NCBI GenBank assembly: GCA_039096225.1
Contig: JBBPEB010000014.1
Coordinates: forward strand, 1,550,001 to 1,614,000
Origin: Blastocystis sp. Blastoise
Lineage: Eukaryota; Protista; Bigyra: Opalinata
DNA: 64,000 nucleotides
Direction: 5' to 3'
Position numbers and translations under genes: made by a program. Under the pieces are notes generated by a model that did not search any database, was not told where the DNA came from, and was given only the letters and a program-made list of their open reading frames with translations. Shown here in pieces: positions 48,947-64,000 of this stretch. The stretch's first letter is position 1. Every line of letters begins with the position of its first letter.

Positions 48947-49412
48947 ATGAATAATTTTTCTTCTGTTGCAACACTTGTCTTTGAATTAGACAGTACGTAT
49001 TCATTCTCTTATGTTTCTTTTTCTTATGTACATAAATAGAATATATTGTTCTTCAAATGAATGATAAAAGACAAGTTTTTGGTATTTTAAGATCTTTTGA
49101 TCAATACTGTAATCTTGTTCTTGAACAATCTGCAGAACGAAAATATGTTGATGATAAATATTGTGATATTCCTTTAGGTGTTCAAATTATTCGAGGTGAT
49201 GAAATATGTATATTAGGAGAGATTGTATGATATTTAAAAATATAAATATAAAATCTTGAATTTAATATAACTATTTTTTTATAAATTTCATTTAGGATCC
49301 AGAAGAATTGATGAAACCTATTCCTGGTATGACTAGAACTACAATTGAAGGATTACTTGGTGGTGATGAAGAAGAACCTAATGAATCCGAAGAAACAAAA
49401 ACTGAACAATAA
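48947..49412 (+). CDS. LSM1: Sm-like protein LSM1 (3 exons; missed by the ORF track)
   Basis: ATLVFELDKYIVLQMNDKRQVFGILRSFDQYCNLVLEQSAERKYVDDKYCDIPLGVQIIRGDEICILGEID. Confidence 0.9.
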
Positions 49413-49743: not shown

Positions 49744-50852
49744 TTAATGTTTTTTAGTTTGATTAGCAACTTTGTTAATAGAAGCTAAAATAGCATCTCT
49801 ATCACCTAAGTATCTATATAAAAAAAATACATAATATATATTAAGATAGTTTATTTATTCAATATATATATATTAAATAATAAGAATATATCGTATTTTC
49901 CTCTAAGAGGAGCAATAGCATCTTCATTAGCAATAACATTTCCTTCTTCATCAAAATCATAAACAAGAGGAACACCAGTAGGAATATTAAGACCAGTAAT
50001 ATCCTTTTCAGAAATATGATCAAGGTGCATAACAAGAGCTCTTAAAGAATTACCATGAGCAGCAATAACTATTCTCTTACCAGATTTAATCTTAGGGAAA
50101 ATTTCATTATCCCAAATAGGTAAGAATCTTTCACCTACATATAGTATTATAAAGATAATAATGATATACTATGAAGAAATAATAGTATATAAAAAAAGAT
50201 ATATATATATTTTTTATAACATACCAGTAGTCTTAAGAGATTCACATTTAGGAGCTTCTTCAACAGAAAGAGATTCATATCTATATATATATAATATATT
50301 TATTATAATATATTTAGTATTATATATAATAGTCTATAAATATCTACCTTCTATCATTCTTAGGATAATAAGGAGATTCTTCTTCAACAGCTGGAGGAGG
50401 TACATCATAAGAACGTCTCCAAACCATAACTTGATCGATACCAAATTTATCGACAGTTTCTTGTTTGTTTAAACCTTGAAGAGCACCATAATGTCTTTCA
50501 TTAAGTCTCCAAGTTCTAGTAACAGGAATCCACATTTGATCAGTTTCTTCTAAAGAAATCCAAAGAGTCTTTATAGCTCTCTTTAAAAGAGATGTATAGG
50601 CTTCATCAAAGACATAACTACCTTCCTTAAGAAGCTTACCAGCTTGATGAGCTTCAACTTCACCTATAAGAATATCAAACATAGAATAACAGTTTCATTC
50701 ATATAAATAATAATTATTATAAGTACATCAAAAAATACACCCTTAGCAGAAAGAGGAACATCAGTCCAACCAGTGAAGAGATTCTTACTATTCCATTCAG
50801 ATTCTCCGTGACGAATTAAAACTAATTGAGTGAAAACTTTTTTATCTGACAT
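49744..50852 (-). CDS. PGAM: Cofactor-dependent phosphoglycerate mutase (dPGM)
   Basis: [68 protein letters not shown]. No presequence seen; the last intron has a non-GT donor. Confidence 0.96.
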
Positions 50853-52045
50853 TATTAAGATAGAAACTATTAAAAAAAAACAATCTTTCTTCTTTCTCTT
50901 TTTTTTTTGGAACTTCAAGATATTTTTAGAGAACCAAACAAATGATTACACACCACATGTCATCGATGGTGTCATCACTATGAATAACGAATTATTTTTC
51001 ATTGGCTTCTTTTTTATTGGAATAACCATGATTTTTCGGTATTTTTTCTTAACAACACTTTTTTCATTATTCTTAATTGAATCGATTCATCTCTTACTAT
51101 TTAAATCTAATAAAAGCTAAAAATAATATTTAATCGATGTCCATACTTATAAGGTATATTCTAATCTTTATTTTTCATAGATTGCGAGAAAAATTATATA
51201 ATAATTATCCTATTTTTCACATATTTTGTTACTTTTTAAAGTTAGCATGAAGATAAATTGATTTAGTTTGCTAATCATGCCATTATTATTTTTATATCGT
51301 TCTTTATTATTTTATTTATAGAGTCTTTTCTACTTTAACTAATTTTTTATCCTATTCAAATTTAAAAGATCTTGAATCTCTATGTAGCAATCATAGAAAT
51401 ATAGTTCTTTATAAGAATCTCTCTTATAAGAATGCGAGTATCATGTTTATTCTTCTTTACTTGAATTGCTTCAAGAGTCTATTTTTAATACGATGTAGAG
51501 AACCGATTTATATTAAAATACTGTTGTATCATTCCTTTTATTCAAATGTATTTCAAGCTATCCTTTACATGAAATAATCATGAGAAACTTCATACTTCTC
51601 TTCATCACTGCATTTAAGGTTTCCTCTAATTAGATGATTATTTTTATAAGATAAAGACACAAATCAAGCTATAATTTGTCAATAATTTGTTTAGGAGTTA
51701 TAAAGAGAAAATTATATGTATTCAAGAATTGAAGACTTGAGGCTATGAGTGATTAATGTTTAAAAAAAACATTTTAATACGGGTCTTTAAAGTTAAATAA
51801 CGATAAACATGTTTTATTTAACAATAATTGGACTATTTTTTCATAATAGCTTCGCTGATTGGTTGCGAAAGAGATACTATTTGAAACCAACAAAAAAATG
51901 AGACATTGATTGGGGTTTTTTGAAAGTTTAGATTTTCCTATAGAAATAATGTAAAAAACCGTGATTTTTCACCTATTGAATGACAGTGCAATCAAATGGA
52001 AAGAAAGAACAAGTATTTTTCTTTATTTTTAATAGAATCTTAATA

Positions 52046-54173
52046 ATGGGTCAGCAACTCTCTTCTACAATGGATATCAACGAACCCAGAGCTACATTCC
52101 AGCTTCCTGGATGGTACTCTTCAGATGCTGAAATCACAGCTACAATAGTAAACATGCTTAATGCTTCTGTAGGTGCTTTGACTAATGGTGATAATGGCGT
52201 ATATCAAAGAATTTCTCAATTCTATCCAAATTATACTCCAATGATTTTTGTTAAAAAGCAATTTCAAACTAGATTATCCATTTTACATCCTGGATTTTTA
52301 AAATTCCTTAATTCAAATAATCCTAATCAAATGAATACCACACAACAAGATAATCCACAATTAGAAGTATAGTTGATACTATTCATTCATTCATATATTT
52401 ATTATTTTCTTTTTATATTATATATATATATTGATCTATATATAATCATATATATATATATATATAGAATTATTTTAAAACATTAGTAATAGATGGACCT
52501 GCTTATCTCTCTCAACTTCGTACAAAAGCTGTATATATATATATTTTTTTAAATATTCATTTTCTTTTTAATTATTTTGTTATTTTTAAATATTTAATTT
52601 CATGTATATATAATATTTTTTAATTTCATATATATAATATTTTTTAATTTCATATATATAATATTTTTAATTTCATATATATAGTATTTTAAATTTCATA
52701 TATATATTATTTATTTTGCTTTATATAAATAGACAATAATAGATTTCTTACATAAATTAGCTCAAGATTATCATACAATGTATAAAATGAATGTTTTCCT
52801 CTTTGCAGAGATCTCTTCGACTATTGTCGATATTATGTCAGACTGTCTCGGGTAAGAATAAAATATATACATTTATTTATTATTAAATTATTATTTATTA
52901 TTATAGTTGACAAATTATATATTTTTTTTATATATTGATTGTTAAGTTTTCTTCTCATTTAGATATATGTATATACTATTTAATATCGATTATAGTTATG
53001 ATTTCGCTGCTACTTATCAAGCTGCCTGGTATCAATATTTCTCTTGTCTTATTACTATCATGAAATCATTCCCAAGTATAGATTATATTATATTATATTA
53101 TTATATTATTATATTATATTATTGTTATTATTATTATTATATTATTGTTATTATTATTATTATATATTATTATTATTATTATATATTGTTATTATTATAA
53201 TATGTTGCTATTATTATATTATATTATATTATTATTATTATATATATAGATATTCAAGATGGAGCTAGTGTTTCCTTTATGACTCTTCGAGAATATATGA
53301 TTAATAAAAGTATATATATGTATAATTTTTTATCTTTATTTAAACGGTATTTATCTATATTTATTTTTCTTCTTCTTACTATTATTATACTTATTTTTAT
53401 TATATAGATTACCCCTTTATTGAGTTCTCTCAGGAACTTCTTGGCGTGAATCATCAGGTGATCGACTTACAACATCAATGGCTAGTCACTCTTCTTAATG
53501 TATATATATATATATATATATAATAATAATTATTATTATTATATAAGATCTATTTTTTTAAATACTAATTAAATTATTCTTAGTATTATTTATTTTTTTT
53601 TAATTGATTTTATTCCTTCTATATTATATAGGTATTAAATTGCATTATTTTAGATGATAACAACTTAGGTATTAATATGAATGATATATTTACCGCGCTT
53701 CGTGACTACAGTGCCCTCCATTTCTTCGAAGAAGAACAAATATTCTGTAAAGCAACGTATTTTTTATTATTCTATATATTATTATTATTATTATATTTAT
53801 TATTATTATTATTATCTGAGATAATAATATTATTATTATTATCTGAGCTATTATTATTATACTTATTATTATATTTATTATTATTATTATTATTATTATA
53901 TAGTGATTATCCTGAACGTGATTTTCATCTTCAACAACATCAAGTAATCTATATAAATAATATATAATTTATATAATTTATCTATAGGATTTCTTAAAGA
54001 AAGTAATTAAGACATCTAATGACATACAAGTAGTAACAAACGATGATCAATATCGTCAACTACTTCAAAGTACACTTACATATCTTGTACGATGGTTAAC
54101 CAATCATATTCGAGTTGTAGATAGAACTATGATGAAATATTGCTCAAAAGACAATTCAAATGCTAAAGTGTAA
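52046..54173 (+). CDS. Globin-like + hemerythrin fusion protein with N-myristoylation motif
   Basis: Nine exons joined by GT-AG with no stop. Hemerythrin motifs IDLQH, LHFFEEE, H.QQH, WLTNHIRVVD. Globin-like LHKLAQDYH....F..IS..IV..M..CLG.DF......AAW...FS.L..IM. Starts MGQQLS. Confidence 0.8.

Positions 54174-55020: not shown

Positions 55021-64000
<8,980 letters not shown>

Follow-up and report, generated by a model that had tools for sequence, protein, structure and literature searches.

Can the globin and the hemerythrin folds, the textbook pair of unrelated oxygen-binding solutions, be joined in a single natural chain? Such a combination is unexpected, and the question is raised by a gene of Blastocystis, the human gut's commonest eukaryote and an anaerobe whose mucosal oxygen tolerance is poorly understood. 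The gene lies at positions 52046-54173 of the 64,000-nucleotide stretch of DNA that was analysed (the window), on the forward strand, as do all of its features given below. An earlier note, made from the letters alone, had read it as a fusion of the two folds in an anaerobic gut protist, and the source is indeed a Blastocystis from a tortoise.

Gene model and conservation of the fusion

Nine coding pieces separated by eight GT-AG introns give a stop-free coding sequence of 1086 nt (361 aa in the window translation) that ends with a TAA at 54171-54173. The exon borders and phases fit, and the spliced model is letter for letter the NCBI protein P0005 (361 aa), in agreement with the nine-exon gene proposed in the earlier note. 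As the note also remarked, the gene appears only in fragments in the mechanical list of open reading frames, and every motif quoted there (MGQQLS, LHKLAQDYH, CLGYDFAATYQAAWYQYFSCLITIM, QH, HFFEEE, H..QH and NHI..VD) is found in the protein; the acceptor of intron 4, placed at about 53229, has to be moved to 53249/53250. The NCBI entry names P0005 hypothetical and records hemerythrin as its sole domain. The introns are 44-202 nt long with a GC content of 5-13%, compared with 32% in the exons and 22.5% in the whole window, and the gene is present in one copy in the source genome. The annotation pipeline retained introns only if they were supported by RNA-seq (PMC10690189). In two RNA-type runs, 37% and 22% of the words sampled from the stretch were found, with exons making up 45% of the stretch.

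The two-domain gene was recovered from at least six Blastocystis lineages. A search with the whole protein found P0006 (365 aa, 98% coverage; Blastocystis ATCC 50177/Nand II, subtype 1) and P0007, and a metagenome scan yielded 14 further loci, each with collinear matches to both halves. These loci represent four sequence types with a GC content of 38-55%, and they come from human-gut assemblies where the records give an origin. When exon 1 was searched against 1.84 billion representatives, the only matches were two intron-read-through fragments of a relative and two repeat-rich chance matches. The contigs of these fragments (L002-L004; short introns, about 31% GC) have the same exons as far as the first hemerythrin exon.

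It is extremely improbable that the gene model has falsely merged two adjoining genes, since a poly(A) mRNA of a relative covers both halves. This sequence, from a human-gut lineage (L022), ends in a poly(A) run and matches twelve exon blocks of a genomic locus (L031) at 100% identity, with eleven introns removed; its 286-codon open reading frame extends from the C helix to the stop and includes both domains. The single transcript assumed in the earlier note, as opposed to transcripts ending between the domains, is thus seen in a relative. The merging of two genes is also contradicted by the identical domain order in at least six lineages, by the independent RNA-guided annotation that arrived at the identical protein, and by common intron positions that flank the conserved linker on both sides. 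L031 has seven of the window gene's eight intron positions, and the introns after residues 107 and 128, on both sides of exon 2, are common to the human-gut lineage. It follows that the two domains were already joined when the tortoise and human clades separated, and that the hemerythrin half was not acquired recently.

Some peculiarities of transcript processing were observed among the relatives. At intron 1 (L022:1-232 against L031:4069-4130) the transcript removes 62 nt, versus about 34 nt implied by the protein alignment; the farther acceptor is used and the frame is shifted, which may reflect alternative or faulty splicing, or else a quirk of the assembly. Two introns of L031 (4952-4990 and 5113-5150; 38-39 nt) begin with ATATCCTT and end with AC, and look like U12-type (minor) AT-AC introns. 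The other introns of this locus are ordinary GT-AG introns of 28-30 nt, and the window gene has long GT-AG introns (53500-53631 and 53757-53903) at the positions of the two AT-AC introns. Polyadenylation creates stop codons in human Blastocystis subtypes, and this fits the subtype 1 orthologue (L021:6400-6480), whose annotated protein has no genomic stop codon and whose frame continues, where the window gene has its TAA.

Two folds in one chain

As judged from both sequence and model, residues 216-352 form a four-helix bundle of the canonical bacteriohemerythrin type with a full set of predicted di-iron ligands. Helix 1 is encoded by exon 6 (53408..53499, residues 215-245) and helix 2 by exon 7 (53632..53756, residues 246-287); the short exon 8 (53904..53943, residues 287-300) is followed by exon 9 (53988..54173, residues 301-361 and the TAA) with helices 3-4. 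The whole protein matches TIGR02481 with 75.2 bits (E = 4.6e-21; cut-off 51.75) and Pfam PF01814 with 33.9 bits (E = 4.9e-8; cut-off 25.3). In a sequence search of the PDB, the hemerythrin domain of DcrH matched residues 220-351 (E = 4.3e-10), and seven residues align to its iron ligands: His237 in exon 6 (codon 53473-53475), His275 (53719-53721) and Glu279 (53731-53733) in exon 7, His295 (53926-53928) and His299 (53938-53940) in exon 8, and His340 (54105-54107) and Asp345 (54120-54122) in exon 9. All seven positions, which the earlier note had picked out, are invariant in P0005, P0006 and P0007, three full-length sequences that are about 31% identical overall.

A fold search of 48,161 chains that does not depend on Foldseek matched residues 216-358 to hemerythrins with Z of 15.8, 15.4 and 13.9 (4xpw, Z = 15.8, 131 of 131 residues aligned; 2avk, Z = 15.4), Foldseek against the PDB gave a TM of 0.79, and a shape search of the ESM Atlas gave a bacteriohemerythrin cluster with a TM of 0.81. 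The closest bacterial hemerythrins found share 31-33% identity. Six-frame searches of the genome with PF01814 and PF00042 gave no match, because introns split the domains, and are uninformative on absence; likewise, a Pfam scan exon by exon gave almost no match because the exons are too short.

The N-terminal half is more divergent. Exon 1 (52046..52366, residues 1-107) encodes the leader with an acylation motif, the A, B and C helices of the globin and the beginning of the CD insertion, with helices at residues 32-47, 50-57, 65-80 and 82-90 in the model. The E helix starts in exon 2 (52468..52530, residues 108-128), the F and G helices and a conserved SDCLG motif are in exon 3 (52733..52851, residues 129-168), and the H helix is in exon 4 (52996..53075, residues 168-195), after which exon 5 (53250..53309, residues 195-215) contributes the conserved inter-domain linker SF..LRE.M. 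The Pfam Globin profile (PF00042) matches neither the whole protein nor residues 1-215; on residues 125-195 only, it scores 13.8 bits, below the cut-off of 22, and this match spans profile positions 61-115, the register of helices F to H. A phmmer search of the PDB placed neuroglobin at the top (E = 0.0044; residues 76-190 on neuroglobin 30-144), and globins made up 22 of the 24 matches. Neuroglobin was also matched by a profile of P0005 and the exon pieces of the relative (E = 8.9e-4) and by the full family profile A7 (E = 6.5e-4), the latter with globins as 21 of 24 matches. In the hhalign comparison with ten spirochaete globins, the single sequence gave P = 0.05 and the family profile P = 1.1e-4, with His142 on the invariant His of these globins, and the language-model neighbours of residues 50-195 are globin clusters throughout (0.90; 185 shared features). 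Four MAFFT alignments were set aside, three with misplaced short exon fragments (A1, A3 and A4) and one in which bacterial hemerythrins landed on the globin half (A8).

The structure was modelled with AF2 from an alignment of Blastocystis sequences only (A9), from which bacterial hemerythrins and globins were excluded, the globins because the result would otherwise be circular. This model has a mean pLDDT of 80.6 and a pTM of 0.81, with low confidence at residues 1-17, 93-101, 197-203 and 356-361; a single-sequence model reached a pLDDT of 41, and its Foldseek search was not used. Among the best 50 Foldseek matches in the PDB there are hemerythrins and globins only (neuroglobin 4mpm, TM by target 0.67). 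In the search of 48,161 chains, residues 27-197 matched about 30 different globins or globin-like domains at Z of 10-13.4 and nothing else, with 135-148 of 140-152 residues aligned; the best was Lucina HbII-III (Z = 13.4, 148 of 152 residues, rmsd 3.2), and the non-heme globin of RsbR was matched at Z = 10.0. The Atlas shape search also gave a globin cluster (TM 0.67).

A generic helical domain, with a likeness to globins that arose by chance or as a modelling artefact, might account for the Pfam score under the cut-off and for the ESM Atlas's own model of the protein, which has no globin neighbour (TM < 0.45). The fold-search tool moreover notes that chance Z of 10-13 is frequent for helical models. 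A Z of about 13 is near the level at which this tool warns of arrangements common in all-helical models, so what carries the argument is that only globins are matched here and that these matches agree with the register seen in the sequence. The same helix register emerges from the sequence comparison with the PDB, the profile-profile comparison, the language-model features and the fold search with a globin-free alignment, and the N-terminal fold matches are globins only, at the coverage given above. We thus regard a chance likeness as very unlikely, and residues 27-197, by sequence and model, as a highly divergent globin-fold domain of the 3-on-3 type, as the globin-like helix pattern described in the earlier note had suggested.

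The heme question

The candidate proximal (F8) heme ligand is His142 (codon 52772..52774 in exon 3), which aligns to His96 of neuroglobin and is preceded by a one-residue insertion relative to globins. At the distal E7 position the window protein has Tyr109, encoded by exon 2, and P0006 and P0007 have Phe. The residue aligned to CD1 is Leu88, one residue away from Phe87; P0006 and P0007 show a gap or Lys at the CD1 position and no counterpart of Phe87, and the rows of the human subtypes in the alignment contain no CD1 Phe. P0005 and the second lineage L003 have His at the proximal position; two of the human-gut types have Tyr instead, and another two have Asn. The tortoise protein and its subtype 1 orthologue are 41% identical over their hemerythrin halves and 23% identical over their globin halves, which evolve about twice as fast. 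Because the proximal His is not conserved and the globin half is fast, heme binding seems possible for the window protein and unlikely for the human subtypes, as far as their sequences indicate; it does not appear to be a conserved feature of the family and may be lost or lineage-specific. The 'dual O2/NO sensor' of the earlier note is hence not sustained, with a proximal His only here and in one relative and Tyr or Asn in four human-gut lineages that have no CD1 Phe in the alignment. The earlier note had itself voiced the doubt that so divergent a globin, with an extra residue before the proximal His, binds heme.

A putative dual-cofactor protein, in which the globin of the tortoise clade holds heme b via His142 and the hemerythrin holds di-iron, is a tentative possibility that we do not favour. 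Each membrane-tethered chain would then have two centres for gas binding or redox chemistry, which might for example act as a heme-to-diiron electron relay in the removal of O2 or NO. Every globin alignment sets His142 on the proximal His, but an extra residue lies ahead of it, and the His that is retained in L003 is replaced by Tyr or Asn in four human-gut lineages. A Phe adjoins the CD1 position and Tyr109 is at E7, features compatible with a heme pocket, yet the globin half as a whole has diverged much further than the hemerythrin half (the 23% and 41% given above). The genome has cytochrome b5 domains and the organism therefore uses heme, while no ferrochelatase was found in the genome by a search that exon splitting weakens. 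Three cytochrome b5 domain matches lie within 2 kb of each other (G000:C31:1032370-1034385), as a tandem array or a multi-domain gene.

It is also conceivable, although doubtful, that heme b on His142 and the di-iron site of the tortoise-clade protein form an intramolecular redox pair at the membrane, and that the heme half was later lost in the human-associated subtypes. With both centres loaded, the protein would represent a type of enzyme not seen before, one that consumes O2 or NO, or else a gas sensor with two thresholds. We prefer a membrane-tethered hemerythrin with a globin-fold partner. The series of His, Tyr and Asn at the proximal position makes the family a natural test bed for the reuse of a globin fold after heme loss.

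A proposed role and the known systems compared

A link to the membrane is suggested by the start of the protein. The N-myristoylation-type motif MGQQLSS (52046..52066), with Gly2 and a small residue at position 6, follows the rule of Met-Gly, a permitted position 3 and a small uncharged position 6. The window protein, L003 and subtype 1 start with MGQQLS, two other types with MGQQLA and one with MGQRLA; the motif MGQ(Q/R)L(S/A) is thus conserved in six lineages, and the residues after it diverge. An N-myristoyltransferase is encoded in the genome (PF01233, E = 1.8e-27, and PF02799, E = 3.7e-30, adjoining on contig C32). The fit to the G2/S6 consensus claimed in the earlier note is therefore reinforced, and the leader is most likely an N-myristoylated segment of about 26 flexible residues, as its sequence suggests. 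Myristate by itself is a weak anchor, and no second signal (Cys or basic patch) is evident in the protein.

We suggest, with somewhat better than even confidence, that this single-copy Blastocystis gene encodes a leader, a globin fold, a linker and a hemerythrin, with a predicted di-iron site for gas at the membrane. In order, the parts are the leader of about 26 residues (MGQQLS...), the globin fold (residues 27-197), a conserved linker of 18 residues and the hemerythrin (216-352), whose di-iron centre is probably the conserved ligand-binding site. This site would take up O2, or perhaps NO or peroxide, at a membrane surface of an oxygen-sensitive anaerobe, so that oxygen would be buffered or removed near Fe-S enzymes, or reported. 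The globin-fold domain would serve as a partner module. In the tortoise clade it keeps the proximal His and may still hold heme; in the human-gut subtypes this His is gone, and the domain there is therefore most likely heme-free, with a structural or regulatory part as in the non-heme globin of RsbR. Bacteriohemerythrins are O2-binding proteins with roles in sensing or in the protection of Fe-S enzymes. The Campylobacter work on hemerythrins (Kendall et al. 2014, as cited in PMC6397501) and the hemerythrins of anaerobic protists, which are thought to sense oxygen (PMC8136499), belong to the same field. Overall, a membrane-tethered hemerythrin for the handling of O2, NO or reactive oxygen species, with a globin-fold partner domain, seems to be the most likely function.

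The hemerythrin could instead be an iron or redox sensor, or an enzyme, and not an O2 carrier or scavenger, with its state relayed to the globin-fold domain or to partners; the models for such a role are FBXL5 and the catalase-like or NO-related hemerythrin-like proteins. Domains of the hemerythrin-like type that have an identical set of ligands do act as iron and redox sensors or catalysts (PMC9388753), and no output domain is recognisable in the window protein, so that signalling by protein-protein contacts is conceivable. However, the top matches are of the O2-binding bacteriohemerythrin/DcrH type and not of the FBXL5 type, and we find this role quite unlikely for the window protein.

A cofactor-dependent phosphoglycerate mutase (PGAM) in several exons lies head-to-head with the gene on the minus strand (49851-50918, start near 50852), with 1.2 kb between them; this orientation, reported in the earlier note, is correct for the window, but the arrangement is not kept in the subtype 1 orthologue, which has an MFS sugar transporter as its neighbour (L021:2942-4475). 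A functional tie to PGAM was ruled out because of these different neighbours. Elsewhere in the window, a 57-codon open reading frame between glycolytic genes (49057-49230, forward strand) resembles an Sm/LSm-fold protein, and a run of about 90 Asn codons (an AAT repeat at 56389-56793) leaves several frames open on each strand, as is typical of the low-complexity DNA that tortoise isolates are reported to have.

The earlier note knew of no described protein with these two domains, and this still holds for the sources covered. Our literature search, which included few subscription journals, found no globin-hemerythrin fusion and no link of either fold to a Blastocystis protein, and neither globin nor hemerythrin is mentioned in the main text of the genome paper (PMC10690189). 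Against a set of 5.8 billion proteins, queries with the whole protein or its N-terminal half returned only Blastocystis sequences, and a shape search of the ESM Atlas representatives gave no cluster spanning both halves; the combination is not common in the sequence collections searched. Chimeric hemerythrins are already known, and the joining of a globin fold to a hemerythrin is a new variant of these for which no description was found.

Among known systems, the hemerythrin half is closest to bacteriohemerythrin and DcrH (PDB 2avk, 4xpx; DcrH is reviewed in PMC9388753), with which it has the four-helix bundle, the seven ligands and their order in common (Z = 15.4-15.8; about 30% identical to DcrH-Hr). 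The window domain, in contrast, is eukaryotic, split by introns and C-terminal to a globin fold, whereas the known bacteriohemerythrins are on a chemoreceptor, cyclase or phosphodiesterase, none of which is present here, or stand alone. FBXL5 and the hemerythrins that stand alone in anaerobic protists, with reports from Mastigamoeba and other anaerobes (PMC8136499), are likewise eukaryotic hemerythrin-type domains in iron or oxygen biology, but they have neither a globin-fold domain nor an acylation leader.

The globin half has its best sequence match in neuroglobin, with the same 3-on-3 fold and the G-H helix motif CLG..F....AAW in common, and the N-terminal extension with a Gly2 acylation motif is shared with the N-acylated membrane globins of the globin X type (a motif of animal globins attributed to Blank and Burmester 2012 in PMC3730353). 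Compared with neuroglobin and globin X, no more than 13-16% of residues are identical, Tyr takes the place of His at the distal position, an extra residue precedes the proximal His, which is lost in sister lineages, and the window protein has a C-terminal hemerythrin and no palmitoylation Cys. Globin-coupled sensors and flavohemoglobins also have a globin at the N-terminus and another functional domain after it, although here the C-terminal partner is itself a gas-binding metalloprotein fold and not a transmitter (MCP, GGDEF or kinase) or an FAD/NAD reductase; with hemerythrin as its only C-terminal domain and no signalling transmitter, the protein falls outside the definition of a globin-coupled sensor. 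The non-heme globin of RsbR (PDB 2bnl), finally, comes from bacteria, where it is linked to a STAS domain within the stressosome, and its likeness to the window protein is one of fold (Z = 10.0) with no sequence relation shown; as a globin fold that has no heme ligand and acts as a partner or sensor module, it provides a precedent for the orthologues of the human subtypes.
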